From Penicillus capitatus (taxonomy: Eukaryota; Plantae; Chlorophyta), in assembly GCA_965649825.1 (NCBI GenBank), contig OZ287708.1, positions 267,411 to 331,410 of the forward strand: 64,000 nt of DNA, in the 5' to 3' direction. A program made the position numbers and the translations under genes. Position 1 is the stretch's first letter. Each line of letters begins with the position of its first letter. Positions 1-56,712 of this stretch are shown here, piece by piece. The notes under the pieces are model-generated. The model ran no database searches. It was given only the letters and a program-made list of their open reading frames with translations, and had not been told where the DNA came from.

Positions 1-46
1 CGGGATATCCGTAGTCCTCTTCTGTGAACATGCGTTCGTCAGCCAT
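1..46 (-). CDS. Exon 1 of a third copy of the module Pro-rich gene (partial)
   Basis: The reverse complement from the ATG at 46 reads MADERMFTEEDYGYP, identical to exon 1 of the R3 copy (22426-22374). Confidence 0.75.
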   Translation of the reverse strand, partial: MADERMFTEEDYGYP

Positions 47-131
47 TGTCTTCTTCTTCGCTTGAGCTCTGGAAAGCAGGAAGGCGGGAGTTCAAACAAC
101 TCGACAGTGCGGAAGGGTCTGCGACGCGACC

Positions 132-137
132 TTTATA
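132..137 (-). promoter_or_regulatory. TATA box (TATAAA) of module gene copy R1
   Basis: CCTATAAAG on the minus strand, ~86 nt upstream of the ATG. The same element is at 10316-10321 and 22512-22517. Confidence 0.6.
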
Positions 138-1859
138 GGCCGCCTCGGTTGCCGAGCGCGACCTGCGGGTGGCGGCTGGGAACCGTGGCCGTTTGGCGGC
201 GCTGCGTGCGCCGCCGGACAGAGAATCGGCCGCCAGACCTCTAGAAGCGCAGAGTACTGTCGTCGGAATGCGCGTCGCGAAAGGGAGAGCACTTCTGGAA
301 GCTTTTCTAAGTGTTTTACAGAAGAGATTCCTTACAGTCTGTGCGCAAGCTCCTCTCAGAGTGTAACGCGCATGCGTTCTCTGCAGTTGTTCCGACGCGA
401 TTCTCCGAACGGCAAACCGCTCGGCTCAGCTCCGCGTTGCCTGGACAGAGGAATGAGGCGGTCTCTCTCGTTCGCAGGATCGGAACGGACTCTGCGTCTG
501 GACGGCCGTCTGTTTCGGGCGTCTCCGCCGCAAACGCCGTCGACAGAGCGTTCTGCGCGGTGTAACGCGAGTCGGTTCGAGGAGTCACCGTTGGTCCTAA
601 CTCCCTCGAACATGGAAGGCAGAACTGAACGACGCCTCTCCGAGGACCAGACGGCCACGGAGTCGTTTTTTCAGTTAATGCTCGTGCACAGCGCCGAGGG
701 AGTGTTTTGGAAGCGCCGTTCGCTCCGATAAACGCAGTCGGGTCGCGTTTTGCATCGGCTGTGCAAGACTGCTGTTCTGTCTGCAATGCCATCGATCAGA
801 CAGCTTCAAGAGCAACTTGTGCGATGGCACTGTAGATCGCGGCAGATGCCAGTCGCGATCCGATGCCATCGCCTACCTTCTCTCCTGCGTATTGCACAGT
901 GCAGAGCGCACCAAAGTGGCGAATTGTCATTGGAAAGGGATAGTTCTGCTGCATCCTCATTGGAATCGTCCACGCCGTTCCGTTCTAGTGTCCTGCGAGT
1001 TCTGATGCTGTGGTGGCTGTGACGGAGAACGTCCGTCTTCTGTTCCGAGACCACTTGTCGAACATCTCTGTAATGAAAGACGAACAACTTCCGCCGAGTG
1101 TTCTGTGCGCGCGGGGCGTTCCTGGACGATGTCGTCAGTGCTGTCCGCGTGCTCTTGGACAGTAAGTGCACTGTGGAATGCATGAACGGCAGAGACTGTA
1201 GTCACGCCTGCTCTCGGCTCTGCCGTTTGGACTGTGACTCGGCATTCCTCGCAGAACACCGAGATGCCTGTCGACGTCGACGCGTTGGATCGAATCCGAT
1301 GGATGCATCCGCATAACAAAGCGTCCTCGAAACAACGGTGCGAGAGAACATACATTACGTGATGCGGCTCTGCAGACGGTAAAACGATTTCAGATGCGAG
1401 AGAGTTTGTTCGGATGCTAAAAGAATGCGACTGTCCACTCCTCGATGTTTCGGCTGGCAAATCGAGACGAGACAGAAGGGATGAATCCAATCGCGGATTC
1501 AGTTCCTACCTTTCACTGCATCTACGCGAGCATCCTGCACAGAGAACTGATGGATCTCGATATCTTTACGAGGCCAAACCTCCTGCGCTGAGAGCACGAC
1601 GATTGACCGGTGAATAGGAAGAGGAGCGAGAGATGCAAAGGCATCTGGAAAGAGCTAACGCCGACCTCGCTGAACGCAGGCCTCACTTCAACGAAAGAAC
1701 AGCGAAAACGAGCGCGTGGCGAGAGAGCATGCTTCGGTCGTTCGAGAACTGAGAAGCAATGTGCGTCTCTGTGGCTCTCGTGTGGAGGGATCGCGAATGA
1801 TGTGGCGTGCGTGCCTGCCTGCTTGCATGATCAGATTCTACGCGAGAAACGCAGAACGC

Positions 1860-3493
1860 GAGAAATGGAGATGCGATTCGTAGCAGTCTTGCAAGAGAGT
1901 CTCGCCAAGCTCGTGGTTTACTCGACCGAACGACGCAAGAGATCGACATCGTTGGCAGCGTGGTGTGACGGACCGTCACCACTGTACCAGGTTTGCATCT
2001 GCCAATGATGACCAGCGTGTGTATACTATGTGCTTGTCTGCCTGCTCTAGCCTACTTCAGTGATTCTCAGAGACAGGCCAGCAAAGATGCCGGACATATT
2101 GCTGGATTGGAAGTCATGCGTATCATCAATGAACCGACGGCAGCTGCATTGGCCTATGGTGTCGATAAGAGAGAGGGATCGGTGGCCGTTTATGATTTGG
2201 GTGGTGGCACCTACGATATCTCCATCCTTGAGATCACAGGTGGCGTCTTCGAAGCGAAAGCCACAAATGGAGATACCTTTCTGGGCGGCGAGGATTTCGA
2301 CAACACCCTGCTGACGTACATCATCGAGGAATTCAAAAAAGATCAGGGGATCGATCTGACAAAGGATCGTTTAGCCGTTCAGAGAATCAGAGTGGCGGCA
2401 GAGAAGGCGAAGATTGAGCTGTCATCGACGACAACGACCGATATCGATCTTCCGTTCACTACAGCAGATGCATCCGGCGCCAAGCACCTGCATCAAACCT
2501 TGACGCGGGCAAAGTACGAATCTCTGGTCAGTCAACTGCTGGACCAAACAAAACAGCCCTGTCAAAACTGCCTCAAAGATGCTGGGGTCTCCCGTGCTGA
2601 TATCAACGACATCGTTCTGGTGGGCGGCATGACGCGTATGCCAAAGGTGCATGAAATTGTCAATGGCATTTTTGGCAAGGACCCATCTCGAGGGGTCAAC
2701 CCGGACGAGGTGGTGGCCATGGGTGCTGCCATCCAAGGTGGTGTGCTGTGAGGTGACCGAGGTGACCTCTTGCTGCTGGATGTCACTCCTCTGTCGATGG
2801 GAATCGAGACATTGGGAGGGGTGATAACCGTGATGATCCCCCGTAACACCACTGTGCCGACCAAGAAGACCCAGACCTTCTCTACTGCCGCTGACATGCA
2901 GACCCAAGTGGGGATCAAGGTCTTCCAAGGCGAAAGACAGATGGTTACCGACAACAAACTTCTCGGAGAGTTTGAGCTCGTCGGCATTCCTCCTGCATCC
3001 AGAGGTGTTCCACAGATTGATGTGACGTTTGACATGGATGCGGACGGTACATGCACGTCTCTGCCAAAGACAAAGCCACCACCAAAGAACAGAAGATCAC
3101 TGTTCAGTCCTCTGGTGTCTCTCCGAAGAGCAGATCCAAGATATGGTGCGCAAGAGTGAGCAGTTTGCAGAGGAAGACAAGAAGAGGAACGAGCTTGTCG
3201 AGGTTAAGAACAATGCCGACTCCCTCTGCTATACAGCCGAAAAGAACCTGGAAGAGCACAAAAGCAAACTTCCTCAGAATATCACCGACGATGTCAATAC
3301 AGCTATGTCAGATCTGAGAGCCGCCAAAGAGAAAGACGACCTCGAAAACATCAAGATGGCCATTCAGAAGCTGAATCAAGCGCTGATGAAGATCGGTGAG
3401 GCGATTTATGGCTTATCCGACAAAGGCAGCAGCGAGGGAGAACCTGCAGCGGGAGGAGATCAAGAAAGGGCTCCAGGACAGAGAAAAGAGTGA
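1860..3493 (+). pseudogene. mtHSP70: Mitochondrial-type Hsp70 (DnaK family) pseudogene, 5'-truncated
   Basis: Motifs [70 protein letters not shown] and LLDVTPLS. In-frame TGA at 2749-2751, frameshifts near 3050 and 3115, and decayed upstream remnants (NGDA ~1865; VTTVP, intron, AYF). Confidence 0.92.
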
Positions 3494-5639
3494 CAAAGGT
3501 GTCCGTCAGTGTCAAAAGTGCGAGATGCAGAAATGCCATGTTTCTATGTTTAACTCTCTCGCTAACTGTGGTTGCTTGGATCGCACCAGCCACGACCTCT
3601 TCTCCACATCGCAAAGTTTGGTCTCGCATCAATTCGCAACTGTCCGTCTGCCGATTCCAGTTGTTCTGCAATGGCGTCGTCCCAGCGAACACAACAGGCG
3701 CGAGGCGCATCACGCGATTCGGGGCAATTGTGCAAGGGGATCCTGTGAAGGCTCATGCTCGACTCGACCGATCGAGAGATCGACCGAACCTTGCAGCGCC
3801 TATCGGAACTGCGCGCACAACCTGAACAGAATATCAAGGGCTGCCACGCTGGGTGGGTATGCACGCGACAGCTGTCTCGTCCATTTAGGTACCTGTGAAT
3901 GCGGTCGGATGCTTTGAATGTTGTGCTGCAAGCAGAACGTGTTTTCGTCGATCTTGGCTGTCAATACGTGGTCGAGTGCTCGGCATGTGAAGCTGAGGCC
4001 ATTCTCACACGCAGGCGACATTCCCGTGGTTGTGCTCTCTGTCATGGACTCGATGGAAATGACGTGATCGTTGCAGAGCCATCAAAGATCACATGCATAT
4101 CGGCGGAGGCCGATGCGTGTCAGGAACGGGGAGCAGCCGTCCAAGCCACGTCGACTGAACGAGGTTACAGACTGCAGACAGAGATCTCTTCTGTGGGATC
4201 TTCTTCTATCGTCAGAGATGAAGAGTGGCATGACAGATAATGGAATCGAATCGATGCTGGATCGCTGGAGAGACTCGAGAAAGTGGCCGAAGCCAATCTC
4301 GGCAAGGTACCCCCACAAAGAAAGTCAGATGCTTTGACAGAAGGGTACGTGTCCTCGATAGCTAAAGCTGAAACCAAGAAGGGATCGAAGAAAGGATTCC
4401 TGTTGCCAAGACAACAACAAAACGCTCAGCCATCTGCAAAACCGAAGGCTGTTCACTGCTCTCTCCCCGTTTCTCTCGAATCAGGGACAGCGTCGGCGAC
4501 GACGACTCGGCATAAGAATGAACAGTCCGTCTGCGTCTCGGATACGGTGCGAGAGAGGGACACCCGAACGGAGGAGAGCACAGAGGACACTGGCACCGAG
4601 AAGGTAGGCATCTCTGAATCGGCCAATGCATAACGATCTGTGAGGTTCACCGCACTGAGTCATCATGCTATCTATCCCCTTTGACTCGATGGCTGAGATG
4701 TGTGCCGGTTTCGCTTATCAGTTTTCATCATGCTTCCCCATGCAGCACCCATTACTGTTCCCTTGATATGCTTTGTTGCCGTCTGTCAGATCGCCGAGAG
4801 TTGCTGACGCCGAGATTCCTGTCTAGACTGAAATTAAGAACTGCATTCGGTTGTCGCGTGCATTGAGTTTCTATTCATCGATATCTGGATGTCCGAGCGA
4901 TCCTTCAGCTGGCACAATCTATGACAGCCATCTCCTGCATGCTCTAAGACTGTAAAGTTGTTCTTGATGTTGTTTATTGTACTTCATCAGGTTGATATAC
5001 CTTGTTCATTCTTAACGCTGTGTTCCTGACTGTTTGTATCGAATCCGACACGCACATATTGAACGTTGACGTCACACACATTAGACCATACACACATTGT
5101 AAACGTCAACAACATTTAAGAAGAAGAATTGAACTCGATCACAGTGGTGGTGTAATACTCTCTCATTCGCGAGCACACGTCGTTATCTCTGTAGGACAAG
5201 ATAGGTTGGCGGCGCCGCCATGCTGCATTCTATTCTGCGGAGGCAATCTCCATCTGAGATAAAGGCGCTGGGGGCTGAAGTTTTTTAAAAATCGTCTAGC
5301 GCATTCGACACAGGGAAGATTACGTGCGTTCTCTGACAGCAGTTCATTTCTCCGCTATATCACTCTTTCTAAAACTAAGAACTCTGATGTCACACTTCAT
5401 TGAATAAAGCAAAAAAAAGGTAGAAAGATAATAGAGAGCTTTGACAGCAGGTCTTCCTCAAGACATGTTTGCTGAACGAATCTCTACAACTGAAAACAAT
5501 GTTTTCATATTGTCTCTGTCTCTGCAGACTGTGACATTGTTTAGAAAAGAGATTGTGTAAAGAATAGCTAACCTGTAGATCACTTCCTTAAAGTGAGAGG
5601 ATGTTGATCTGCGAGGCAGACTCAGATTTGGCCGCTTGC

Positions 5640-8600
5640 GCCAGCTTCAATCCAGAACTGCCTCCACCGACAGCCAGAGCAGAAGGATGGCCTCCAGTGA
5701 CGGCCAGAGCGGTCAATAGTGTGCCCTGGCTGCCTCCACTGGCGGCCAGAGCGTCAATAGCGTGCCCATGGCCGCCTCCAATGGCGTCCAGAGCGGTAGG
5801 TAGGGGGTGCCCTGGCTGCCTCCACTGGCAGCCAGAGCGTTGGGCTGGACGCCTGTGACCGCCTCTCTCTCTCCGGCGGCTGCCAGACGTCAGGTGGACG
5901 CCTCCATATGTCCCCGTGTGATATGGCGGCGGCCAGACGTCAGGTGGACGCCTGTGACCGCCTCTCTCTCCGGCGGCGGCCAGAGCGGTAGGTAGGGTGC
6001 CCTGGCTGCCTCCACTGGCAGCCAGAGCGTTGGGCTGGACGCCTGTGACCGCCTCTCTCTCTCCGGCGGCTGCCAGACGTCAGGTGGACGCCTCCATATG
6101 TCCCCGTGTGATATGGCGGCGGCCAGACGTCAGGTGGACGCCTGTGACCGCCTCTCTCTCCGGCGGCGGCCAGAGCGGTAGGTAGGGTGCCCTGGCTGCC
6201 TCCACTGGCAGCCAGAGCGTTGGGCTGGACGCCTGTGACCGCCTCTCTCTCTCTCTCTCCGGCGGCTGCCAGACGTCAGGTGGACGCCTCCATATGTCCC
6301 CGTGTGATATGGCGGCGGCCAGACGTCAGGTTGAACGCCTGTATTTGTCTTCGGCGGCTGCCAGACGTCATGTGGACGCCTGTGACCGCCTCTCTCTCCG
6401 GCGGCGGCCAGAGCGGTAGGTGGGGTGCCCTGGCTGCCTCCACTGGCAGCCAGAGCGTTGGGCTGGACGCCTGTGACCGCCTCTCTCTCTCCGGCGGCTG
6501 CCAGACGTCAGGTGGACGCCTCCATATGTCCCCGTGTGATATGGCGGCGGCCAGACGTCAGGTTGAACGCCTGTATTTGTCTTCGGCGGCTGCCAGACGT
6601 CATGTGGACGCCTGTGACCGCCTCTCTCTCCGGCGGCGGCCAGAGCGGTAGGTGGGGTGCCCTGGCTGCCTCCACTGGCGGCCAGAGCGTAAGGGTCGAC
6701 CTCCAGCGACGGCCAGATGTCTAGTCAGCCAAAATATCCGCCTCCACTGGCGTGCAGAGCAGGTAGGTAGAGTGCTCTGGCTGCCTCCACTGACAGCCGG
6801 AGCGTGAGGGTCGGTTTCCAGAGACGGCCAGATGAGTGTCGGCCGCCATTGCCGCCTCCACTCGCGGCCAGAGCGGTAGGCAGGGTGCCTAGGCCGCCTC
6901 CACTGGCGGCCAGAGAGGTGGGCCGGCCGCCCATTGCTGCCTTCAATAGCAGCCAAAGTCTGGCTGGCCTCCAGTGACGGCCAGAGATTAGGTCGTCCGC
7001 CATGGCTGCCTCCAATGGCAGCCAAAACGGTGGGCCGGCCGCCCATTGCTGCCTTCAATAGCAGCCAAAGTCTGGCTGGCCTCCAGTGACGGCCAGAGAT
7101 TAGGTCGTCCGCCATGGCTGCCTCCAATGGCAGCCAAAACGGTGGGTTGGCCTCCATCGGCGGCGAGACGTCAGGTGGACGCCTCTTTGTGTCTCCAGTG
7201 GCTGTGAGACGTCAGGTGGGCGCCTGTGACCGCCTCCATCGGCGGCCAGGCGTCAGGTGGGTGCCTGTATTTATCCCTATCGGCGGCGGCGAGACCTCAG
7301 ATTGGACGCCTGAGACCGCCTCCATCGGCGGCCAGACGTCGGGTGGACGCCTGAGACCGCCTCCATCGGCGGCCAGACGTCGGGTGGACGCCTGAGACCG
7401 CCTCCATCGGCGGCCAGACGTCGGGTGGACGCTTGAGACCGCCTTTCTTTTCGGCGGCGGCGAGACCTCAGATTGGACGCTTGAGACCGCCTTTCTTTCC
7501 GGCGGCGGCGAGACCTCAGATTGAACGCCTGTCTCTGTCTCCGGCAGCGGCCAGACAATGGGTGGGCCCAGACGACGGTCTCCAGCAGCAGCAAGAGCGG
7601 CAAAAAGATCGTCCGTGACGGACTCCAACAGCCGCCAGATATCAGGTAGGGCGCAGACGGCGGTCTTAAATGACAGCAGGGCAGCTAACAGATTATCCCT
7701 GAGGGCCAATGACAGCAGCGCAGATAACAGATCATCCATGGAGGTCTCCAGCATCCATTGACATTAGGGCACCTAACGGATCATCCATGAGGAACTCCAG
7801 CATCCAATAACAGCAAGAACGGCAAGTAGATCATGTGTAACGGCCTCCAGTACCCGCCTTACGTCAAGTGGACAATCGACGAATGTTTCCAATCGCAGCA
7901 GAGCAAATAACAGATCAACCCAGACTACCTTCTACCTCCAATAATGGCATATAGATCACCATGAGGCCGTCCATCCTCCAACCACAAAAGGTAGTACACA
8001 GCCTACTCCAGCCTCCGACAGCAGCAGTACAGCAGGTAGATCATCAGAGTCGGCCTCCAGCCTCCGACAGCAGCAGTACAGCAGGTAGATCATCAGAGTC
8101 GGCCTCCAGCCTCCGACAGCAGCAGTACAGCAGGTAGATCATGTGAGACATCGTCCAGCATCCAATGGCAGCAAGTAGAACATATGTGTCGGCCTCAGGG
8201 CCTCCATCAGCAGCCAGTCAGCAAATAGATCGTCAGGGATGGTTCCAGACAGCCTCCAGTCACTGCAACCGTCAAACTGATCATCCGGGGTGCCTCCAGC
8301 CTTCAATCACAGCAAGAAGAACATCCATGACAGCCTCCGTTCGCAGTAATATAGTATTAAGACATCTGAGACAGTTTCCAGCCTCCAATGGCAGCAATAC
8401 AGCAGGTAGATCATGCGAGACAGCCTCCAGCCGCCTTAGCAGCAAAACATCAGGTAGGACACTCCAGCCTCCAATGGCAGCAATACTGCAAGAACATCAT
8501 CTATGTCGGCCTCCAGCCTCCGAGAGCAGCAATACAGCAGGTAGAACATCCGAGTTGGCCTCCAGCTTCCAGTCACAACAGAGCCGCGAGTAGATCATGC

Positions 8601-8850
8601 GAGACGGCCTTCTATTTCCAATCGCGGCAAGACAGAATGTAGATCATCCATGACAGCTCCATCTTCCAATCGCAGCAGAGCAGCTAACAGATCTTCCCAG
8701 ACTGCCTTCTATCTCCAATAACGGCATATAGATGATCATGAGGGCGTCTAGCCTCCAATCACAGAAGGTAGTACACAGCCTACTCCAGCCTCCAAATCGC
8801 AGCAAGACATCAGGTAGGACAACCCAGCCTCCAAGCAAAAAAACAGCAAA
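5640..8850. repeat. Compound GC-rich minisatellite region of R2
   Basis: Units of 190/190/238/232 bp (starts 5807, 5997, 6187, 6425), a ~113-bp duplication (~6920-7140), ~39-bp units (~7300-7460) and 43-bp units x~3 (~8010-8140). The GCCTCCA core recurs throughout. Confidence 0.93.
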
Positions 8851-9022
8851 TCAGCTTCCGACAGCCTTCGTGCAAAAAAAACAGCCAACACAGAGCCAAC
8901 CACAACAAAGCGAAGGTGGAATGGCAGAGAAGCAGCAGAAAAAAAGAAAACAACCCCTTCATTATTGTTTTTTATTTTTTGTTTTTTTTCATCTACCCCC
9001 AAGGAAAACAGCTTGGAAAAAA

Positions 9023-10219
9023 TTAACTAGATCTGGCCCCCCATACAGGCCAATTCTGGATAGAAATCTACACAGCAAACAAACCATAAGAGAGACTAAA
9101 GAATAGTTGAACTTACACATTGTCCCGACATAAAGAAGAGACGTTCTGGGATGACTGGCTGGCAGATCTGAATGCACTGGCCAGAAAGGAAATAGGGCCT
9201 GGGAGGAATACCTAGGGGGCCGACCGAAAAGATGAATGGACGGGGTGGGATGACAGATGGGCAGGTGAGAGAATACAAAGACGTGCGTTCTGGAAAGGCA
9301 GGTGGCCGAGAATGGAGGGAGAGGAAAAAGGGACGTGAAGGAATTGAAGGAGGGGGGGATGCAGGAATGCAGTATACTTGTGGCCGGGCAGGAAATAGAG
9401 AGGACTGGGCAGGTTGGGAGGCTGAAGGCGCGGCTGGCGGAGCTAGGGAACACTCCATGTGGTGAGACTGGGCAGGCTGCGAGTCTGGCGGAGGAGGGGC
9501 TGGTTGAGATGCTGGCGGCACTGCCGTCTGGGCAGGAGACCACTCCATATGGAACGGATGGAAGAATGGCTCCGAGGGTGGCGGCTGGAGAGGCGGCGTG
9601 GCCGGCTGAGTAGGCGGCGGCGCGGAGCTCTGGGAGGCGGCATGCTGCGAAGCCATCGGCGGCATGCCATGCTGCTCGGAGGGAGATTGCTGCTGGGGAG
9701 GCGGCGATGCGGTCCGGGCGGGCGGAGGGGCTGCAGGCCGGCCCTCTTGGGCCAGCCGCGCTCTCCTCCCCTCCGAGGAGAGGACCCTAGCGCGCCGTAC
9801 CGGCCGAGGCTGTGGGGTTTGGACCCTATTGGGTCCAAACCTCACAGGAGGGGTCTGCGCCGCGAGGTGCTGCTGACCCCTCTGAGCAGTTGTCTGGGCT
9901 TTCAAATCCCAGTACAACTGCTCACGCTCGGCCGGACTCATGCCCTGGAAGGCCCTAGGCGGTCGGTCGCCTAGGACCTCCGGCAAAGTCACTTGGGAGA
10001 ATCTACATAACACACAAGGGTCAGAGGTGTCTCGAAGAGCAGACGCGCCGCGCGCTACGGGGCTCCTCGACTGCAGCCGGACGCATGCGTGCGATGAAAA
10101 GCGTTCTGGCCGCAGTCGAGGAGCCCCGTAGCGCTCGGCGCGTCGAAACATGGCCAGTGGACTCACGGTTTGCCTGGATATCCGTAATCGTCTTCGGTAG
10201 CCATGTGAGCATCAGCCAT
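9023..10219 (-). CDS. Module Pro-rich protein, 3 exons (10219-10167, 10002-9117, 9067-9023), ~327 aa
   Basis: GTGAGT donor, CTGAC branch-like site and TAG acceptor for intron 1; GTAAGT...TAG 49-nt intron 2. Splice phases match the R3 copy and the frame stays open. N-terminal domain FSQVTLPEVLG...LYWDLK...TPPVRFGPNRVQTPQPRP is conserved. Confidence 0.8.
10042..10144 (-). ncRNA. Long intronic hairpin (structured element in intron 1)
   Basis: Perfect 23-bp inverted repeat (10052-10074 / 10112-10134), extendable to 10042/10144. It covaries with the R3 copy. Confidence 0.7.
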
Positions 10220-10315
10220 CGTGGTCGTTGAGGTCGCAGAAAACAACAGCAAGAACTCAGAAAACAGAGCGCAAGAACTCGGAAACTCGAGTGCGGAAGG
10301 CTCTGAGACAAGACC

Positions 10316-10321
10316 TTTATA
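10316..10321 (-). promoter_or_regulatory. TATA box of module gene copy R2
   Basis: CCTATAAAG ~97 nt upstream of the ATG at 10219, conserved in all three copies. Confidence 0.6.
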
Positions 10322-12354
10322 GGCCGCCTCGGTTGCCGGGCGCGGCCTGCGGGTGGTGGGTGGGAACTGTGGCCGTTTGGCGGCGCTGCATGCGCCGCCG
10401 GACAGAGAATCGGCCGCCAGACCTCTAGAAGCGCAGAGTACTGTCGTCGGAATGCGCGTCGCGAAAGGGAGAGCACTTCTGGAAGCTTTTCTAAGTGTTT
10501 TACAGAAGAGATTCCTTACAGTCTGTGCGCAAGCTCCTCTCAGAGTGTAACGCGCATGCGTTCTCTGCAGTTGTTCCGACGCGATTCTCCGAACGGCAAA
10601 CCGCTCGGCTCAGCTCCGCGTTGCCTGGACAGAGGAATGAGGCGGTCTCTCTCGTTCGCAGGATCGGAACGGACTGTGCGTCTGGACGGCCGTCTGTTTC
10701 GGGCGTTTCCGCCGCAAACGCCGCGAGAGAGCGTTCTGCGCGGTGTAACGCGAATCGGTTCGAGGAGTTGGCGTGCGTCCTAACTCCCTCGAACAAGGAA
10801 GGCGGAACCGACGACGCCTTCTGCGAGGACCAGACGGCCACGGAGTCGTTTTTTCAGTTAATGCTCGTGCACAGCGCCGAGGGAGTGTTTTGGAAACGCC
10901 GTTCGCTCCGATAAACGCAGTCGGGTCGCGTTTTGCGTCGGCTGTGCAAGACTGCTGTTCTGTCTCCAATGCCATCGATCAGACAGCTTCAAGAGCAACT
11001 TGTGCGATGGCACTGTAGATCGCGGCAGATGCCAGTCGCGATCCGATGCCATCGCCTACTTTCCGGGCATGTTCTCTATTCTGCAGAGTTCACTAGAACG
11101 GTGGATCACGACTGGAAAGGGATGGTATGCTGCTGCGTCCTCGTCGGAATCGTCCATGCCGTTCCGTTCTAGTCTGGCGAGTTCTGATTTTATGAGGGCT
11201 GTGACGGAGAACGTCCGTCTTCTGTTCGGAGACCACTTGTCGAAGATCTCTGTAATGAAAGACGAATAACTGCCGCCGAGTGTTCTGCGCGCGCGGGGCG
11301 TTCTAGGACGATGTCGTTGGCGCCGGCGATGTTCTCTCGTGCGGCAAATGCTCTGTGGTACGCTTGAACGACAGACTCTGCAGTCATTCCTGCTCTTAGC
11401 CCTGCCGTTCGGACCAGCGACTCGGCATTACTCACCGAGCGCCGAGATGCGTGTCACCGTCGACGCGTTGGATCGAATCCGATGAATGCATTCGCCTAGC
11501 AAAGCGTCCTCAAAACAACGGTGCTAGAGAACGCACATTGAGTGTTGCGCTCTGTAGACGGTCCAACGATTTCGGATGAGAGAGAGTTTGCTCGCGACGA
11601 ATGGGCGCGCCGACGGAGTGCGACTGTTCGCTCCTCGATTTTTCGGCTGACAAATCGGGGCGAGCTAGAAGGGGATGATGCCTGTCCTGGATTCAGTCCC
11701 TACCTTCCGACGCAGCTGCGCGAGCACGATGCTCTGGGAGCTGACGGACGTGGATTCGACGCGCGAATGCGCGTCAAGTACTCTGCCTTGCCACTGCCGT
11801 GCGTCGTTGTGGACTGTGGCAGCTGCCCGCCGTCTGTTTCATCGTCCTCCTCACTGCTGTCAGTGATCTCTCAACGCATCCATCCGCGCAGCGCGCTGTA
11901 CGCCTGAGCATCTTGCGCTTTGCGTCTGTGCCTTTCAATTAAATCCGCGTCGTGCTTGCGTGCTTTCTTCATCTGTGCTTGATCTTCGGAAAGCAGTAGC
12001 CCAGTGCAAGCATCTTAATCTATCACTGTACTACGGACGGTCGGCGAGGAAAGACGACATCGCCGTTCGCCAAACAACAAGTTGTCTTCTCCTCGACACG
12101 ACGACGGCAACAGACGCCTGAGCTGCATCGCATTCCACGGTTAGGACAGCTCGCTCTCAGACGTGACCAGGTGCCGTTTTATTCAGCAACCGATATATCA
12201 CTGGGCGGAGCACGAGGGAAAGAGCGAACTCTGAACGCGCGACGCGCGTCGGCAGCCGCCGCCACAGTCGTGCTCTTGTCAGGAGATGCATGCTCATCTT
12301 GCCGTAGAGCATTTTGAAGATTCGTCAAGCGTTGCATTACGGTCGCCGCCGAGA

Positions 12355-12987
12355 ATGGCCACTGGAAAAATCATCGCTCGTCTCAAGAACGCGACGCCGA
12401 TCGCCGTCGCTTCTCCGACCACCGCCAGCGTCACGGACTTCTTCCGAGCGGTCGGCATCTCTCCGTGACGCTCCCCACACCAACCACCCTGTGCTTCTTG
12501 CCTTTCAGTGCTGCCGCTGCGTTCCTTACGTTCTGCAGGCGTATCAGCTCGACGAAGTGGCAACGCCTCCAGTCGTGCGCAAGAAGATCGCCCAGAAAAT
12601 CAGAGACCACGCTCACGTGAAGGACACACGAGTACATGTCCCTGCCCACGACTGCCACTGTCATGATCGTCTGCATTAGGCCATCAGCAACCTTCTTGTG
12701 AAAGGCAACGAGGAGCTTTCGGTACACCGCACGCCTTGAGTTATCACTCTTTACCTGACCGAACGTGTGACTGTAGCTGATCATGAATCACTTCAAGCAG
12801 AGACACCACCTGGTACGGGGATGATTGGAGCGAGCGAGGGGATTGAATGGCTGTCGCGGTGCAGATGGCGGAGTATGTCGATACCATGGGAAAGCCAAAA
12901 CTCGTTGTCAAGAAGTCGACGGACTCGCCGTTCCTGCAGAAGTTCTACCAATCGAACTACGCCCACCGCAAAGAGCTGCTGTCATGA
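12355..12987 (+). CDS. NDUFA6: Complex I subunit B14 / NDUFA6 (LYR family), 5 exons
   Basis: The spliced product reads ...VTDFFRA-CCRCVPYVLQAYQLDEV...IRDHAHVKDTR-AISNLLVKGNEELS-LIMNHFKQRHHL-MAEY...SPFLQKFYQSNY. This matches plant B14 motifs. All introns are GT-AG and the frame is intact. Confidence 0.85.
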
Positions 12988-15652: not shown

Positions 15653-17744
15653 AATTGGCGGCGCTTCGCTGACGTGCATGCAAGTAGACGTCGTGACAGT
15701 CATGACCAATTTCGTTTTCCATTCGTTTTCTTTTCTGCTGCTTGTCGTCCGCGACCAGCAGCGTGCATTGATTCTTGACTCTTGTGATGGAGGGCTGGGT
15801 CAAAAACATATCACTGGACCTATTATGAAGTGGGGATGTGTCAAGGGAAAATGATATAGTGTTCCACGAAATCAAGCCAGGTGGACGCATATGTTCTCTG
15901 AACCCCTTGACGGACTGCAGCGTTAAATATGCGTCCATCTTTCGCTTCTCTTTCACAAGTGTTCGTGTCGGGTCTCGATTTCATTTCATAGAGTCCGCGA
16001 GATCACGGGAATTTGCATATTCTTCGATCCTTGGCTGATGCAGTTAGGCACTCCTTCGCTGAATGGGATACTGGTTGAGGATTCGGGACCTTTTGGCTTT
16101 GGGATTCGTGAATTGTAAAAGCGAATGCCTAAGAAATGTGGATCTCTCGAGTCAGAAGCGCGCCAAAAACCACACCGCCCAGAGCTATGTTCTCTGTCCT
16201 GCCGACCGCTGAGCTCTCTCAATGCTGTCAGCAGTGACGACAACAAATACGACATCGATCCATTGACATTTCAATCTCGAAGCAACGCATACGGGATGCA
16301 CGATCTTGCAAAAAGAGACAGGCGCGATCCGACTGAGGAAAAACCATTCCCCGTTATCTATTGTGCCTACTGCTCTCGGATCGTTCAAGGTGGAAAGCTG
16401 CATATACCTTGTGTCGTGAAGAGGGATCATTGGAAAGGGCAATCGCGTCTGTCGTTTGTTTTGCCGTCGGAGATATTCTTGAAAGAGCCTTTTCGTTGTA
16501 CGTGTCGACATTTTTAAACAAATGACGGCGAGAAATTGAGCGGATCATTCGCCACGATGCATAACGATCTGTGATGCTCACCGCACTGAGTCATCATGCC
16601 ATCTATCCCCTCTGACTCCATAACTGAGACGTGTGCCGGTTTTGTTTACCAGTTTTCATCTTGCTTCCCCTATTACTGTTCCCTTGATATGCTTTGTTGC
16701 CGTCTGTCAGATCGCCGAGAGTTGCTGACGCCGAGATTCGTATCTAGACTGAAATCAAGAACTGCATTCGGTTGTCGCGTGCATCGAGTTCCTATTCGTC
16801 GATGTCTGGATGTCCGAGCGATCCTTCAGCTGGCACAATCTATGACAGCCATCTCCTGCATGCTCTAAGACTGCGAAGTTGCTCTTGATGTTGTGAACTG
16901 TACTTCATCAGGTTGATATACCTTGTTCATTCTTAACGCTGTGTTCCTGATTGTTTGCATAGAATCCGACACGCACATATTGAACGTTGACGTCACGACC
17001 ATTACACCAAACACATATTGCAAACGTCGACAACACTTCAATCAGAACTGAACTCGATCACAGTGGTAGTGTAATGCTCTCTCATTCGCGAGCACACGTC
17101 GTCATCTCTGTAGGACAAGATAGGTAGGCGCCGCCGCCATGCTGCATTCTATTCTGCGGAGGCAATCTCCATCTGAGATAAACGCGCTGGCAGCTGAAGT
17201 TTTTTAAAAATCGTCTAGCGCATTCGACACAGGGAAGATTACGTGCGTTCTCTGACAGCAGTTAATTTCTCCGCTATATCACTCTTTCTAAAACTAAGAA
17301 CTCTGATGTCACACTTAATTGTATGCAACAAAACAAGAAAGGTAGAAAGAAGACAGAGAGCTTTGACAGCAGGTCTTCCTCCAAACATGTTTGCTGGACG
17401 TATCTCTACATCTGAAAACGGCGTTTTCGTCTTGCCTCTATCTCTGTAGATGGAACATTGTTTAGAGAGGAGATTGTGTAAAGAATAGCTAACCTGTAGA
17501 TAGCTTCCTTCGAGTGAGAGGTGTTGATCTGCGAGGCAGACTCAGATTTGGAAGCTTGCGCCAGCTTCAATCCAGAACTGCCTCCACTGGCGGCCAGAGC
17601 ATCAGGTAAGGTGCCCTGGCCGCCTCCACTGGCAGCCAGAGCGTTGGACTGGACGCCTGTGACCGCCTCTCTCTCCGGCGGCTATCAGACGTCAGGTTGG
17701 ACGCCTGTCTTTTTCTTCGGCGGCGGCGGCCAGAGCGGTAAGTA

Positions 17745-18990
17745 GGGTGCCCTGGCTGCCTCCACTGGCAGCCAGAGTGGTAGGTTGGCCTCCAGCGGCG
17801 GCCAGAGCGGTAGGTTGGCCTCCAGCGGCGGCCAGATGTCAGTCGGCCGCCCATTGCCGCCTCCATTGGCGGCCAGAGCAGGTAGGTAGAGTGCTCTGGC
17901 TGCCTCCACTGGCAGCCAGAGCGGTAGGTTGGCCTCCAGCGGCGGCCAGATGTCAGTCGGCCGCCCATTGCCGCCTCCACTGGCGGCCAGAGCAGGTAGG
18001 TAGAGTGCTCTGGCTGCCTCCACTGGCAGCCAGAGTGGTAGGTTGGCCTCCAGCGGCGGCCAGATGTCAGTCGGCCGCCCATTGCCGCCTCCACTGGCGG
18101 CCAGAGCAGGTAGGTAGAGTGCTCTGGCTGCCTCCACTGGCAGCCAGAGTGGTAGGTTGGCCTCCAGCGGCGGCCAGATGTCAGTCGGCCGCCCATTGCC
18201 GCCTCCACTGGCGGCCAGAGCAGGTAGGTAGAGTGCTCTGGCTGCCTCCACTGGCAGCCAGAGTGGTAGGTTGGCCTCCAGCGGCGGCCAGATGTCAGTC
18301 GGCCGCCATTGCCGCCTCCATTGGCGGCCAGAGCAGGTAGGTAGAGTGCTCTGGCTGCCTCCACTGGCAGCCAGAGCGGTAGGTTGGCCTCCAGCGGCGG
18401 CCAGATGTCAGTCGGCCGCCCATTGCCGCCTCCACTGGCGGCCAGAGCAGGTAGGTAGAGTGCTCTGGCTGCCTCCACTGGCAGCCAGAGCAGTAGGTTG
18501 GCCTCCAGCGGCGGCCAGATGTCAGTGGGCCGCCCATTGCCGCCTCCACTAGCGGCCAGATGTCAGTCGGCCGCCCATTGCCGCCTCCACTGGCGGCCAG
18601 AGCAGGTAGGTAGAGTGCTCTGGCTGCCTCCACTGGCAGCCAGAGCGGTAGGTTGGCCTCCAGCGGCGGCCAGATGTCAGTCGGCCGCCCATTGCCGCCT
18701 CCACTGGCGGCCAGAGCAGGTAGGTAGAGTGCTCTGGCTGCCTCCACTGGCAGCCAGAGTGGTAGGTTGGCCTCCAGCGGCGGCCAGATGTCAGTCGGCC
18801 GCCATTGCCGCCTCCAGCGGCGGCCAGATGTCAGTCGGCCGCCCATTGCCGCCTCCACTGGCGGCCAGAGCAGGTAGGTAGAGTGCTCTGGCTGCCTCCA
18901 CTGGCAGCCAGAGCGGTAGGTTCGCCTCCAGCGGCGGCCAGATGTCAGTCGGCCGCCATTGCCGCCTCCACTGGCGGCCAGAGTTCAGGT
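17745..18990. repeat. 114-bp minisatellite x~10 (30+41+43-bp subunits)
   Basis: AGAGCAGGTAGG recurs at 17875, 17989, 18103, 18217, 18330, 18444, 18599, 18713 and 18867. Two units carry an extra ~41-bp subunit. Confidence 0.95.
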
Positions 18991-19168
18991 AAGACGTCCA
19001 TGACGACGCGCCAGCAGCCACTAGACATTAGGTAGGGTACGCATGACGGGCTCTAATGACAGCTTGAGCAGTGGGTATGACGTCCACGAAGTCTCTAGTT
19101 ACGGCCAGTATCAGATAGGTCGCCCACGATGGCTTCTCTTGGCATCCAGTCGTGGAAAGGAGATCGCT

Positions 19169-20202
19169 GACGGCCTCCACTAGCCGCCAGCAGGCAGACG
19201 GATCGTCAGGGGCATCCAATACAGCAGCCAGTCACAGCGAGACGCAGGGATAGGTAATCCAGGACGGCCTCCACTAGCCGCCAGCAGGCAAACGGATCGT
19301 CAGGGGCATCCAATACAGCAGCCAGTCACAGCGACACGCAGGGATAGGTAATCCAGGACGGCCTCCACTAGCCGCCAGCAGGCAAACGGTTCGTCAGGGG
19401 CATCCAATACAGCAGCCAGTCACAGCGAGACGCAGGGATAGGTAATCCAGGACGGCCTCCACTAGCCGCCAGCAGGCAGACGGTTCGTCAGGGGCATCCA
19501 ATACAGCAGCCAGTCACAGCGAGACGCAGGGATAGGTAATCCAGGACGGCCTCCACTAGCCGCCAGCAGGCAAACGGTTCGTCAGGGGCATCCAATACAG
19601 CAGCCAGTCACAGCGACACGCAGGGATAGGTAATCCAGGACGGCCTCCACTAGCCGCCAGCAGGCAAACGGATCGTCAGGGGCATCCAATACAGCAGCCA
19701 GTCACAGCGACACGCAGGGATAGGTAATCCAGGACGGCCTCCACTAGCCGCCAGCAGGCAGACGGTTCGTCAGGGGCATCCAATACAGCAGCCAGTCACA
19801 GCGAGACGCAGGGATAGGTAATCCAGGACGGCCTCCACTAGCCGCCAGCAGGCAGACGGTTCGTCAGGGGCATCCAATACAGCAGCCAGTCACAGCGAGA
19901 CGCAGGGATAGGTAATCCAGGACGGCCTCCACTAGCCGCCAGCAGGCAAACGGTTCGTCAGGGGCATCCAATACAGCAGCCAGTCACAGCGAGACGCAGG
20001 GATAGGTAATCCAGGACGGCCTCCACTAGCCGCCAGCAGGCAAACGGTTCGTCAGGGGCATCCAATACAGCAGCCAGTCACAGCGACACGCAGGGATAGG
20101 TAATCCAGGACGGCCTCCACTAGCCGCCAGCAGGCAAACGGTTCGTCAGGGGCATCCAATACAGCAGCCAGTCACAGCGAGACGCAGGGATAGGTAATCC
20201 AT
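19169..20202. repeat. 94-bp minisatellite x11
   Basis: GACGGCCTCCACTAGCCGCC recurs every 94 bp from 19169 to 20109. Confidence 0.97.
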
Positions 20203-20203
20203 C

Positions 20204-20570
20204 ACGGCCTCCAGGCCTCCAACAGCAGCAAGACATGAGGTAGGTAATCCTGTACGGCCTCCAGGCCTCCAACAGCAGCAAGACATCAGGTTGGTAATCC
20301 ATCACGGCCTCCAGGCCTCCAACAGCAGCAAGACATGAGGTAGGTAATCCTGTACGGCCTCCAGGCCTCCAACAGCAGCAAGACATCAGGTTGGTAATCC
20401 ATCACGGCCTCCAGGCCTCCAACAGCAGCAAGACATCAGGTTGGTAATCCATCACGGCCTCCAGGCCTCCAACAGCAGCAAGACATCAGGTTGGTAATCC
20501 ATCACGGCCTCCAGGCCTCCAACAGCAGCAAGACATCAGGTTGGTAATCCTCGACGGCCTCCAGGCCTCC
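20204..20570. repeat. 50-bp minisatellite x~7.5 (two variants)
   Basis: ACGGCCTCCAGGCCTCC recurs at 20204, 20254 ... 20554. Confidence 0.95.
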
Positions 20571-20890
20571 AGCCTCCAATGAGATAGACAAACAGTATAG
20601 GCCGCCTCCAGCCTCCACTGAGATAGACATAAAGTATAGGACGCCTCCAGCCTCCACTGAGATAGACATAAAGTATAGGCCGCCTCCAGCCTCCACTGAG
20701 ATAGACATAAAGTATAGGCCGCCTCCAGCCTCCACTGAGATAGACATAAAGTATAGGCCGCCTCCAGCCTCCACTGAGATAGACATAAAGTATAGGCCGC
20801 CTCCAGCCTCCACTGAGATAGACATAAAGTATTGCAGCCTCCAGCCTCCACTGAGATTGACAGTCGGTATAGGTGCAGCCTCCAGCCTCC
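20565..20890. repeat. 39-bp minisatellite x~8
   Basis: GCCTCCAGCCTCCACTGAGATAGACATAAAGTATAGGCC in tandem. Confidence 0.95.
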
Positions 20891-21126
20891 AAGTAAAAAA
20901 CAGCTAACACAAGGCCAACCACAACAAAGCGGAGGTGGAATGGCAGTGAGACACGACAAGAAAGAAAACAGCCCCTATTAATCTTTTTTTATTATTATTT
21001 TTTCTCACACTTAAAAAGGTGTGAGATTATTGACAGAAAAAAAAATTTTTGTTCCTTTATCAATTTTTGTTACCCTTGAGAAAACAGCTTGCACAAAAAA
21101 CTCCAGTGATCGGCCCCCGATTCAAG

Positions 21127-22426
21127 CTAATTCTCAATAGAAACCTGCAGAACAAACAGAGCATGAGAGAGACTAAAGAAGTGAGCGGGTTGCTTACACA
21201 CTGTCCCGACATGAAGAACAGTCGTTGCGGGATGACTGGGGGGCAGATGGTGATGCACTGGCCGGACATGAAAAACGGACGGGGAGGGAATCCAGGTCGT
21301 CTGACCGGAAAAATAGAGTTGCGGGGAGGGATAGGAGGTGGCTGGTTGAGACAAAAACGCGATGTCCGCTGAGGGAAGGGAGATGGACGAGCCGGGAGGG
21401 AGAAAAAACATGGGCGAGAAGGAATTATAGGGGCAGGAGAGGCAGGAATGCAAAACACAGCCGGCCGTGGAGGAAACAAAGGAGTTCGGCCATGCTGCAC
21501 AGAGGACGGGGAGAAGTCGGGCTGCGGACAGGGAACCGGGGCCCACTCCATGTGAGGAGACTCGACAGGGTGGCATGCGGGCTGCTGGGATGGCGGCTGG
21601 AAAGCAGGCGATGAGGCAGGCAACCACTCCATGTGTGCCTGTTGGCCGGTCTGGGATGCCGGCGGCTGGGTTGGCTGTTGGGTCGGCGGTGGAGGTGCGG
21701 CCGTCTGGGCCTGAGAAGGCGGTGCGGCCGTCTGGGAGGCCGTCGGAGGTGCGGCCGTCTGGGAGGCCGTCGGAGGTGCGGCCGTCTGGGAGGCCGCAGG
21801 AGGTGCTCCAGGCCGGGGGACGGGCGGCTGGGCTGGCGACTGGCGGCTCGGAGGCGGCGCGGCAGGCTCGGAGGCCGGCTGCGAGACAGGCGGCGGCGCA
21901 TAGGTCGGGACTCGCTGGGGCGGCGGAGGTGCAGCAGGCTGGCCCTCTTGGGCCAGCCGCGCATTCCTCTCCTCGGTGGAGAGGATCCTTGCCCGCCGCC
22001 CGGGCCGCGGCTGTGGGGTTTGGACCCTATTGGGTCCAAACCGCACAGGAGGGGTCTGCGCATCGAGGTGCGCTTGACCCCTCTGGGCAGTTGTTCGGGA
22101 TTTTAAATCCCAATACAACTCCCGGCGCGCGGCCTCGTCCAATCTCACGAAGGCCCTGGGCGGGTGGCTTCCCAGGACCTCCCTCAACGTGACTTGGGCG
22201 AAACTGGGAACACACAATGGTTAGAGATCAGTCGAAGAAGAGTTCGTCGAAACGTCACGCGCTGCAGAGCTTCTCGACTGCAGCCGGACGCATGCGTGTT
22301 CATGGAGAGTGTCCAGCCGCAGTCGAAAGGCTCTGCAGCGCGCGACGTTTCGACGAATGGCCAGTGGACTCACGGTCTGTCGGGATATCCGTAGTCCTCT
22401 TCTGTGAACATGCGTTCGTCAGCCAT
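21127..22426 (-). CDS. Module Pro-rich protein, 3 exons (22426-22374, 22203-21198, 21144-21127), ~358 aa
   Basis: GTGAGT donor, CTAAC branch site and CAG acceptor; GTAAGC...CAG 53-nt intron 2. Same phases as R2. Contains internal 9-aa TAAPPxASQ repeats. Confidence 0.8.
22243..22357 (-). ncRNA. Long intronic hairpin (R3 copy)
   Basis: ~47-position stem (22243-22289 / 22311-22357) with few non-Watson-Crick positions. Confidence 0.7.
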
Positions 22427-22511
22427 TGTCTTCTTCTTCGCTTGAGCTCTGGAAAGCAGGAAGGCGGGAGTTCAAACAACTCGACAGTGCGTAAGGGTCT
22501 GCGACGCGACC

Positions 22512-22517
22512 TTTATA
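22512..22517 (-). promoter_or_regulatory. TATA box of module gene copy R3
   Basis: CCTATAAAG ~86 nt upstream of the ATG at 22426. Confidence 0.6.
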
Positions 22518-23544
22518 GGCCGCCTCGGTTGCCGAGCGCGGCCTGCGGGTGGCGGCTGGGAACCGTGACCGTTTGGCGGCGCTGCATGCGCCGCCGGACA
22601 GAGAATCGGCCGCCAGACCTCTAGAAGCGCAGAGTACTGTCGTCGGGATGCGCGACGCGAAAGGGAGAGCGCTTCTGGCTGCTTAACGAAGTGTTTTACA
22701 GGAGAAATTTCTTACAGTTTGTCGGCATGTTCTGCCCTTAGTGTAACGCGCATGCGTTCTCTGCGGCTGTTCCGACGCGGATCTCCGAACGGCAAACCGC
22801 TCGGGTCAGCTCCGCGTTGCCTGGGCAGAGGAATGAGGCGGGCGTTCTCTTTCGCAGGAGCGGCACGGACTCTGCGTCTGGACGGCCGTCTGTTTCGGGC
22901 GTCTCCGCCGCAAACGCCGTCGACAGAGCGTTCTGCGCGGTGTAACGCGAGTCGGTTCGAGGAGTCACCGTTGGTCCTAACTCCCTCGAACATGGAAGGT
23001 AGAACTGAACGACGCCTCTCCGAGGACCAGACGGCCACGGAGTCGTTTTTTTCAGTTAATGCTCGTGCACAGCGCCGAGGGAGTGTTTTGGAAGCGCCGT
23101 TCGCTCCGATCAACGCAGTCGGTCGCGTTGTGCAGCTGCTGTGCAAGACTGCTGTTCTGTCTGCGAATCCGTAGATCGGACAGTTTCGAGGACAACCTGC
23201 GTGGTGGCGCTGTCGATCGCGGTAGAGGCCAGTCGCCATCCAATGTCATCGCCATCTTTATTTCCGGCGTATTCCACAGTGCAGAGCGCACCAAAGTGGT
23301 GAATTGCCATTGGAAAGGGATAGTTCTGCTGCATCCTCATTGGAATTGTCCATACCGTTCCGTTTCAGTGTCTGGTGAGTTCTAATGTTATGAGGGCTAT
23401 GATAGAGAGCGTCTGTTTTCTGTTCGGGGACCACTTGTCGAAAATCTCTGTAATGAAAGACGAATAACTACCGCCGAGTGTTCTATGCGCCATCTCTTCA
23501 CACAATGTCCCTTGTGACTGTGCCGTGATTTCTTTGACGCACAG

Positions 23545-54858: not shown

Positions 54859-55165
54859 GGGAGGGAGCTCGCAGACTGGGCGAAGAATGGAACAGTCTGC
54901 TTCACGCCGGATGACGTCATGTCCACTCACTCGAGCAGACGCATCTCATAGAACGAACGCGCAAGTTCGGCGAGCGTAGCTTCCTGCGGACGCCGACGCA
55001 TTCTGAAACTACTTTTTCTTAAACAATCACTGGGACAACCTCTAAGGAGATTGAAAGAAGCATCATAGCCCGTGTCAAAATACACGAAAGAGAAACCATT
55101 AAAAGAATGCTGAGCCATTCAGAAGACACAGTGGTGAACTGTAAATATATCGACAGAGCTGATGC

Positions 55166-55787
55166 TTAGGACGAGCCGATATACTGGAGGTCGTGTCGCG
55201 AGAGTGTTGTGAACGGCAGAGTGCCGTTGTTGCGGATGACATAGGGTCCTGTCATTGTGGCCTCTCCATCGTAATGCCAGACAAATGGTTCGACGACGGG
55301 AGGCGTGGAGACAGTCAGAGTGCCCGTTATGGCACAGAGCTCTTCGTTGAATATGCCGATAATTGAGTAGATCAGGGGAAACCCGACGGGAATGGCTGGA
55401 TTCTGGGGATTCGCAAAAATCCCCCCGCCAATTCCTGAACAGCAAAGAAACACAGCTTGATACGGAGTCTCGATAGAGACAGCAAACACTCTACCTGTGT
55501 AGACTCCTGGAATATTTGTCGTCGTGATCGTCAGAACCGTACGCGCTTGTGCGAACAGCGTGGTTTCGTTCGGTGCATTTGGAAAGTTGTGTACGACGAG
55601 CCAGTTTCCTGTGGGAGGCGGCGAACAATCAGATACTGTGGCATTAGGCGACCCTTGTGCAGGAGTTCTGCCCGCTTCTGCCGCAGTGATGCAAAGGATT
55701 GCCAACGCGGTGACTAAGCCTGCATGCAGTACGGGTAAGTAACAAACACGCAATGAGGGAGCTGCGTGCACCTCTGATGAGTGCCAT
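55166..55787 (-). CDS. Unknown secreted protein, copy 2
   Basis: Same exon/intron layout as 34581-35202; intact; 19 substitutions counted by eye over ~189 aa. Confidence 0.75.
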
Positions 55788-56712
55788 GTTCGAACGGCTC
55801 GTTAGAGAAAGCTTCGAAAATCCTTGAGAGAGTCGACGAAAGAATAAAACCTTATGCGCTGTAGTATGAATGGATGTAAGAGCGCCCTCAGAATAAATAC
55901 ATGGCATTATCCTTCGCCTTCGAGGCAGCAACCGAAATCTAACCGAAAAGGCCGCGTTAAGATTCTCTCGGTGGATGCCATGCATGGTATCACTGCCACA
56001 GAGGACGTAGAGCGGCTGACAGTCCATTTGCAGCGAGCCTGAGCAAGTATTATGAAAAGATCACTGCGAAGATGCCGACGTTGCATAGTGTGGGTGGGAC
56101 ATGGCCTAGTCGCTCGAATCTTAAGACTATATATGGACCGTCAAACGCATGTCCTTTCAGATGTCACGTCTTCAAGGCGCTGGCTTCATCGTGGCCACAT
56201 GGATGAAACCCATGTGTGGTTCATGACAGGATGGTCGACAGCACTCGCACTTGCTGTCAACACATCTTAGAGAATCTTATCGCAGCCCATAGACGGCAAT
56301 CGTCGAGCTTCAAAATGCCTCTCGGTTCTCAAGAACTGGAACGGGTCCCTGACCATCCGACTCAGATGCTGAACTCTCCCAGGATCCATTCATTAGAGGG
56401 ACCAGTTGCCAGATGCCTCTGCGCAACGGACGAGGCAGAAGTAGAAACGCCCATACCTTTGGGTCATTCTCACCAATATCTTTTCTCCCTTCTCATCTGT
56501 CCATTTTTCAGCCAGAGAGACCGAAGGTGTAATGGTGGGTGATCACGATGTTCTCAGTGACCGAGAGAACTTTCCTAACACACTGCCCATTGGCAGTATT
56601 TTCACTTGACCTGTCATTTCATGACTCCGATGACATCGGATGCACTGCTGTAGGCGAATTCAGTAATAAAGAGAGACAGACATCCAATCGAAGTTTTTTA
56701 CACGTTTTTCAG

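Follow-up and report, generated by a model that had tools for sequence, protein, structure and literature searches.

A three-exon gene family of proline-rich proteins in green algae, one branch of it duplicated together with its flanks

In a stretch of 64,000 nucleotides from the green alga Penicillus capitatus (contig OZ287708.1, positions 267,411 to 331,410 of the forward strand), hereafter the window, the segment between positions 9023 and 10219 had been read in an earlier note as a three-exon gene of an unrecognised proline-rich family, coding for a protein under selection and possibly related to the Gag or ORF1 proteins of retroelements. The locus raises the question of whether these open frames are a gene at all, whether such a gene belongs to the host or to a mobile element, and what its product might do beside the repetitive arrays that accompany it.

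The copy in this segment, here called R2, lies on the minus strand, and its three predicted exons, joined unaltered, give a product of 327 amino acids. Exon 1 (10167..10219), with the ATG at 10219, has 53 nt, that is 17 codons plus 2 nt, and is followed by intron 1 (10003..10166; 164 nt, phase 2, GT...AG), exon 2 (9117..10002; 295 codons plus 1 nt), intron 2 (9068..9116; 49 nt, phase 0, GT...AG) and exon 3 (9023..9067; 14 codons and the stop). Exon 2 encodes an N-terminal domain (N-domain, 9738-10001), a variable linker rich in Pro, Gln, Ala and Ser (9402-9737) and a C-terminal domain (C-domain, 9117-9401), all on the minus strand. A TATAAA box stands about 100 nt upstream of the ATG (10316..10321, minus strand). 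A second complete copy, R3, occupies 21127..22426 of the same strand (exons 22426-22374, 22203-21198 and 21144-21127) and codes for 358 amino acids; its introns of 170 nt (phase 2) and 53 nt (phase 0) are also both of the GT...AG type. The third copy, R1, is cut by the window edge, which leaves the first 46 of the 53 nt of its exon 1 (1..46, minus strand). Its intact orthologous copy is L001b, and the locus L001 is the counterpart of the left 20 kb of the window, with 98% identity outside the arrays. The spliced lengths given in the earlier note, about 327 and 358 residues with R1 as an exon 1 fragment, were thus reproduced, and both R2 and R3 carry the two HMEW/HMEC motifs and the two SGQC repeats that it described. 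Its statement that the gene had been missed by the list of open reading frames holds for the start in exon 1, the short exon 3 and the lack of a name, but not for exon 2, which makes up 90% of the protein and lies within the plain ORFs 9096-10166 (356 aa) and 21060-22217 (385 aa).

The gene model was compared among ten copies, namely R2 and R3 from the window and eight from two metagenome assemblies; the eight loci fetched came from the samples ERZ25074695 and ERZ26696514, the second of which contributes one of the ten copies. Identity to R2 at the protein level is as low as about 50-55%. In all ten the ATG is present, exon 1 measures exactly 53 nt, the donor is a phase-2 GT[AG]AGT and the acceptor an AG, in agreement with the conserved splice phases claimed before, while intron 1 varies in length from 163 to 257 nt. 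At residues 11-15 of exon 1 the amino acids are invariant in the ten copies and each is written with two to four synonymous codons. In the expanded subfamily (subfamily A), intron 2 was found in 8/8 copies, with a GTAAG donor right after the last Cys codon of exon 2, a length of 47-53 nt and a YAG acceptor, and it is followed by an exon 3 of 5-14 codons and a stop, which was read only in the copies whose acceptor was located (five codons in R3, L001b, L003a and L003b; eight in L004b and L005). Exon 2 is open in every subfamily-A copy lying wholly inside its locus. A second subfamily has an extra intron immediately 3' of the N-domain. In relatives called as ORFs, the similarity starts exactly one residue past the acceptor AG and the sequence upstream is unrelated. 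The TATAAA box, also noticed earlier as conserved, is present about 100 nt 5' of the ATG in seven of eight aligned copies, being intact in R1, R2, R3 and four of five aligned relatives, with one substitution in L006. The three-exon model is kept among copies that differ in about 40-50% of their protein sequence, and the shared structure far exceeds chance.

A comparison of dN/dS between copies, which the earlier note had suggested, was run by the Nei-Gojobori method. In correctly registered pairs the values were 0.12-0.45 over the N-terminal 88 residues and 0.05-0.27 over the C-terminal 95 residues, not near 1, with 0/200 bootstraps giving pN ≥ pS in nearly all of these pairs; pairs with L005 were left out of the N-domain calculation, and pairs of L004b or L005 with other copies out of that for the C-domain, their register being off by one codon. 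For R2 and R3 compared over the whole protein, dN/dS was 0.30. Since the C-domain dS exceeds 1 in most pairs, the copies are old and yet have been kept intact. In neighbouring copies the 3' half is more diverged than the 5' half, as in L003a and L003b, whose dS is 0.13 in the N-domain and 1.7 in the C-domain, and the lower divergence of the 5' half points to local homogenisation or mosaic copies. Taken with the conserved splice sites and TATA box, dN/dS values well below 1 support the view that the product is a protein under selection, and the copies form a protein-coding family under purifying selection.

How far the family extends was followed by database searches. A search with R2 gave 23 matches, all of them ORFs without a name in metagenome assemblies of ENA. 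When an N-domain profile (88 residues) was compared with 1.84 billion representative proteins, it matched 27, of which about 23 were true relatives, all of them unnamed ORFs on algal metagenome contigs, and the other four weakly matched repeat proteins. A corresponding profile of the C-domain retrieved no sequence, known members included, probably owing to composition filtering. Ten further relatives that we looked up were all in ENA, one also in NCBI, and none was named. The family comprises no fewer than about 35 ORFs, spread over 20 or more contigs from two or more metagenome assemblies. Its copies are both tandem and dispersed: on one contig they are separated by about 70 and 236 kb, and many further contigs carry copies. 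The JGI metagenome contigs gave no relative, the literature search on the family returned nothing relevant, and neither the window proteins, spliced or unspliced, nor a transcript-derived copy of the spliced protein were found in the protein collection searched. By hmmscan, Pfam had no match at E ≤ 1 for R2 and R3 and none for four divergent members; sequence searches of the PDB, one of them with the C-domain, gave no match, and Foldseek gave 0 matches against the PDB and BFVD (viral structures). The family is unrecognised, as had been stated, in Pfam, in PDB sequences and in fold searches. A weak lead is a likeness to the ExoX-like_C and QSregVF_b domains (PF20600, PF12843), which consists in a short helical module around a conserved Trp. 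The ExoX-like_C protein P0160 was picked up weakly by the family profile search, and residues 10-39 of the N-domain aligned with its repeats over 30 columns with an hhalign probability of only 40% (E = 3e-4); the Pfam model PF20600 matches no family member tested, and the family is not treated as a member.

The Pfam scan of the window ORFs identified TELO2, Tos1, Vps26, a mitochondrial-type HSP70 and MIF4G, and the best matches of the Vps26 ORF are all in Chlorophyta, with identity no higher than 59% (an EukProt entry at 59% and Bryopsis sp. at 56%, ahead of many chlorophytes), which makes the host a chlorophyte without a close relative among annotated genomes. R2 is an ordinary nuclear, intron-containing gene and a member of a taxonomically restricted multigene family, which is known so far only from a few green algae without annotation.

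The encoded protein begins with an acidic stretch, since exon 1 has a pI of about 4.1-4.2, and its hydrophobic runs reach at most 2 residues there and 5 over the whole protein. The N-domain that follows has 88 residues aligned without indels and 28 invariant columns in 17 sequences, in keeping with the conserved N-terminal domain of the earlier reading. Its pI is about 11.6-11.8 and many of its Arg are invariant. In the family Arg is far commoner than Lys (23 and 2 in R2, 31 and 1 in R3). Proline makes up 21-23% of the protein and 30% of the linker. The linker, already described as variable, changes among copies in both length and sequence, its length through short coding repeats, and carries one or two (H)MEW motifs. 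A 27-nt coding minisatellite of 4.3 copies (21691-21806) in the R3 linker explains in part why R3 and R2 differ in length. The C-domain has 95 residues, 42 invariant columns and, as the only indel in either domain alignment, a single-residue gap in 3/13 sequences. It consists of six proline-arginine-aromatic repeats (IPPRPFIFS and IPPRPYFLS are examples in R2), the last two terminating in ...SGQC, and carries four near-invariant Cys; each of the 13 C-domains contains 3-6 PxxPx[RK] and 5-8 [ILF]PxR patterns. No CCHC or retroviral-type knuckle was found among the Cys and His of R2 and R3 when read by eye.

The AlphaFold and Foldseek analysis, also suggested beforehand, was run. The model has a pLDDT of 84-93 for residues 1-40 and below 60 for most remaining residues. 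The confident region, approximately residues 1-50, contains a short helix, a 3-residue helical turn and a 27-residue helix, and these helical residues had no PDB or BFVD match. The strictly conserved Arg-rich stretch comes after this predicted part of about 50 residues; a further short helix is predicted at residues 76-86, and disorder past residue 90. The conserved C-domain, predicted to be disordered, might alternatively become folded on binding a partner or a metal, and AlphaFold, with only 13 sequences, would miss such a fold.

The best account of these features, which we consider reasonably probable, is that the protein is an adaptor, restricted to one lineage and disordered over most of its length, which docks by a basic helical module and carries six proline motifs in its C-terminal part. 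Such a protein would work in a multivalent manner: the very basic N-terminal module would dock on a partner, either nucleic acid or protein, probably in the nucleus, and the six proline-arginine-aromatic repeats may be linear motifs recruiting proline-recognising domains, a role suggested by pattern matching and by analogy with proline-motif ligands. Formin FH1 regions and WASP/WIP-type proteins are proline-rich ligand scaffolds. Like them, the family has a disordered chain with several regularly spaced proline motifs; on the other hand, its repeats add an invariant aromatic residue, Ser and Cys, and no homology is detectable. The class II SH3-type ligand core PxxPx[RK], present 3-6 times per C-domain in the region of pLDDT below 60, is likewise a functional analogy only.

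The genes do not stand alone. R2 and R3 sit in mutually similar units of about 7.7 kb, and R1 is the edge of a third. The order within a unit is a conserved non-coding upstream block of at least 0.7 kb, the gene, co-oriented hairpin minisatellites and a 1-kb tail. On the minus strand, the variable 5'UTR of R2 and its upstream block span 10220..10965, with homology to some copies reaching about 12345, and the upstream conserved blocks of R3 and R1 span 22427..23490 and 47..1554. The AT-richer distal segment of the R2 unit (4626..5657, minus strand) is common to R3, L001, L002 and L003. About 0.7 kb upstream of the TATA box shows 73-89% identity among paralogues, including the copy from the other sample; this block is conserved above synonymous sites and above the 5'UTR, and the 5'UTR between it and the ATG is far more variable. 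We read the block as a putative regulatory region under unusual constraint. In the window it lies at 10322-10965, about 22530-23170 and about 150-790, and it holds several GCATGC-centred palindromes.

Other readings of this region were rejected. A second gene is not supported, as neither of the ORFs 316-792 and 957-1490 stays intact in R2 or R3 and there is no codon periodicity. For a structured RNA, the RNAalifold covariation term was unfavourable (+7.27), with any double change in 10/169 pairs. A heat-shock link through co-regulation with HSP70 was also dropped, as an HSE-like element at about 10470-10500 is not conserved among copies and the neighbouring HSP70 is a fragment beside R1 only. 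This mitochondrial/DnaK-type HSP70 copy (about 1969-3500, plus strand), between the R1 and R2 units, is 5'-truncated, starting at about position 137 of the Pfam model, has one in-frame stop and is probably a pseudogene fragment. Elsewhere in the window we observed an inverted duplication of 2.65 kb with 94% identity (33685-36331 and 54035-56688, about 18 kb apart), and an unrelated 166-nt satellite (52652-53898; 7.5 copies, 97% matches) with a 431-aa ORF running through it.

Palindromic sequence also marks the interior and the 3' side of the gene. In R2 and R3, intron 1 is almost wholly a long, near-perfect hairpin centred on a GCATGC palindrome. In R2 (about 10042-10144) it has an MFE of -98.3 kcal/mol and z = -9.2 against dinucleotide shuffles; in R3 (about 22215-22360) the MFE is about -98 kcal/mol, as in R2, and z = -12.8. 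The sequence of the arms differs between R2 and R3, and their complementarity is kept. Near-perfect hairpins of about 35-55 bp occur in R2, R3, L002a and L003a (z from -7.7 to -12.8), and the hairpin is eroded in L003b, L004b, L005 and L006. Past the stop codon there is an A-rich stretch with AATAAA-like signals (about 8935-9022 in R2). A small CACAC/GTGTG hairpin accompanies this stretch in R3 (about 20990-21060), L006 (11278-11463) and L008 (6740-6957), not in R2, and an element of about 70 nt after the stretch is conserved, with 77% identity between window positions 8876-8948 and L008. The A-rich hairpin and the 70-nt element may be a 3'-end signal.

The arrays start about 0.1-0.6 kb past the stop in all nine copies of the expanded subfamily A that were checked. 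Downstream of R2 (all minus strand) there is a proximal minisatellite of about 49-nt units (8006..8900) and a distal hairpin minisatellite (5658..7555) with units of 41-232 nt, the TGGAGGC motif and an AGTGGA loop; the arrays downstream of R3 cover 17580..20891. In the window arrays (5658-8900 and 17580-20891) strand polarity is strict, with GCCTCCA on the plus strand only. The unit sequences differ between loci. The arrays were rejected as coding DNA, since unit lengths of 41, 49, 50, 94, 115, 190 and 232 nt are not multiples of three. They were also rejected as antisense of the proline-rich coding repeats and a source of small RNAs, since they share with those repeats k-mers of 11 nt at most; their antisense excess is modest and consistent with opposite C/G skew, and one locus shows the opposite. 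Rfam gave 0 matches at the gathering score over the whole window and 0 at E ≤ 0.1 over 4500-12500, and the search for tRNA genes found none.

The constant vicinity of these arrays could mean that gene and arrays are a functional module, in which the Arg-rich N-domain binds the neighbouring hairpins, as DNA or RNA, and the module persists or spreads thereby. Besides the position of the arrays in the nine copies, the 7-mers TGGAGGC and CTACCTG occur in 8/8 subfamily-A arrays, co-oriented on the gene strand, and do not occur elsewhere in the window; many units form hairpins whose loop contains GTGGA, on two stem types at different loci; and the basic N-domain with its invariant Arg would suit such binding. 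By contrast, no arrays accompany the divergent members L007 and L008, a point against any obligatory pairing of protein and array, and the subfamily-B copy L006 has only a small one, without a hairpin; the L003b array forms a different hairpin; no known nucleic-acid-binding fold was matched; and DNA-level processes can maintain the arm symmetry of palindromic minisatellites without selection. The idea that the protein would bind the arrays is somewhat weakened by these data, and we hold the module to be unlikely. The persistence of the same two 7-mers in the same orientation nevertheless exceeds what simple hitch-hiking predicts. A stronger form, in which gene, intron-1 hairpin, upstream block and arrays constitute a self-maintaining "gene plus satellite" module whose Arg-rich protein recognises its own GTGGA-loop hairpins, seems to us distinctly improbable; if true, it would be a cis-linked pair of protein and binding array of a kind not described in algae. 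On the adaptor account, the arrays would be co-duplicated neighbours, possibly drivers of the duplications, and not a required substrate of the protein.

The same units could also be read as a mobile element that encodes, in this protein, a structural or chaperone component of the Gag or ORF1 type. The family is indeed multi-copy, dispersed and tandem, its N-terminus is basic, and the R2 unit has at its two ends, 12345 and 4626, similar 12-nt direct sequences (GACCGTAATGCA and GATCGTTATGCA, gene strand). The 5' end at about 12345 is common to L003b and L004b, but the 3' end differs between copies and the boundaries change from one pairwise comparison to another; the sharp end at 4626 was rejected as an element end, being a feature of R2, the query, and not of the family. 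Neither terminal inverted nor long terminal repeats were seen. Moreover, all copies compared retain both spliceosomal introns, an unexpected outcome if they had passed through RNA, and the precomputed Pfam annotation of called genes within 10 kb of six loci records no reverse transcriptase, integrase, endonuclease or transposase. It lists host-type domains only (HSP70, PAP2, choline kinase, COG4, Tmemb_14, NSUN2, protein kinase and others). For a DNA transposon or Helitron the signs are mixed: the similar 12-nt sequences of the R2 unit and the shared 5' end stand against the differing 3' ends, the lack of a transposase-type domain on record at the six loci and the lack of inverted termini. Retroelement Gag and LINE ORF1p share with the family a basic protein, many copies and repeat-rich DNA; the family differs in keeping spliceosomal introns without a partner polymerase gene, in lacking a knuckle, coiled-coil or RRM architecture, and in having no sequence or fold match to viral or solved proteins. 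The age of the copies, still intact and constrained, also speaks against a mobile element. The Gag/ORF1 reading of the earlier note is largely refuted by the retained introns, the missing enzymatic partners and the missing fold and Pfam matches, and we give it very little probability.

An equally slight chance is left to a non-functional origin, in which GC-rich repetitive DNA, recently duplicated and gene-converted, would have given rise to the open frames incidentally. Segmental duplicates abound in the region, which also contains the broken HSP70 copy, and the 5' halves of L003a and L003b are homogenised; however, dN/dS is well below 1 even where dS exceeds 1, all subfamily-A copies wholly within their locus are open through exon 2, five consecutive codons of exon 1 change synonymously only, and the frame-preserving conservation ends exactly at the splice sites. 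Least probable of all is a secreted cell-wall glycoprotein rich in hydroxyproline, a type common among green algae. The high proline content and the green-algal host would suit it, but it is opposed by the acidic N-terminus without signal peptide or membrane segment (composition analysis of hydrophobic runs), by the absence of extensin-typical Ser-(Pro)n blocks on reading R2 and R3 by eye, uncounted, and by an Arg-rich basic domain atypical of such proteins.

We conclude that the genes belong to the host and that DNA-level segmental duplication amplified one branch of the family along with its flanks; the expanded subfamily spread as DNA, not through RNA. The divergent members L007 and L008 lie among housekeeping genes, without arrays and without the conserved upstream block, and L008 keeps the 3' A-rich hairpin region. 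The family resembles other orphan multigene families of disordered proline-rich repeat proteins in having no homologue outside a narrow lineage, in its short conserved domains around a fast-changing low-complexity linker, in its many tandem and dispersed copies and in its expansion by segmental duplication. It differs from them in that the expanded copies carry the conserved 0.7-kb non-coding upstream block, the long intron-1 hairpin and the co-oriented downstream hairpin minisatellites.

The family shows that a constrained set of dozens of genes can escape protein-family libraries and named proteomes entirely where the host lineage is known only from unannotated assemblies, and that gene calling by ORFs alone misplaces both the start and the end of every member on such contigs. 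No long-standing open question is touched unless the link between protein and arrays is real. The family illustrates clearly that a protein can be disordered over most of its length and yet strongly constrained at both ends, and its duplicated units, which tie gene-family expansion to minisatellites, are useful for work on the way in which genes carry tandem arrays and long conserved promoters along with them.
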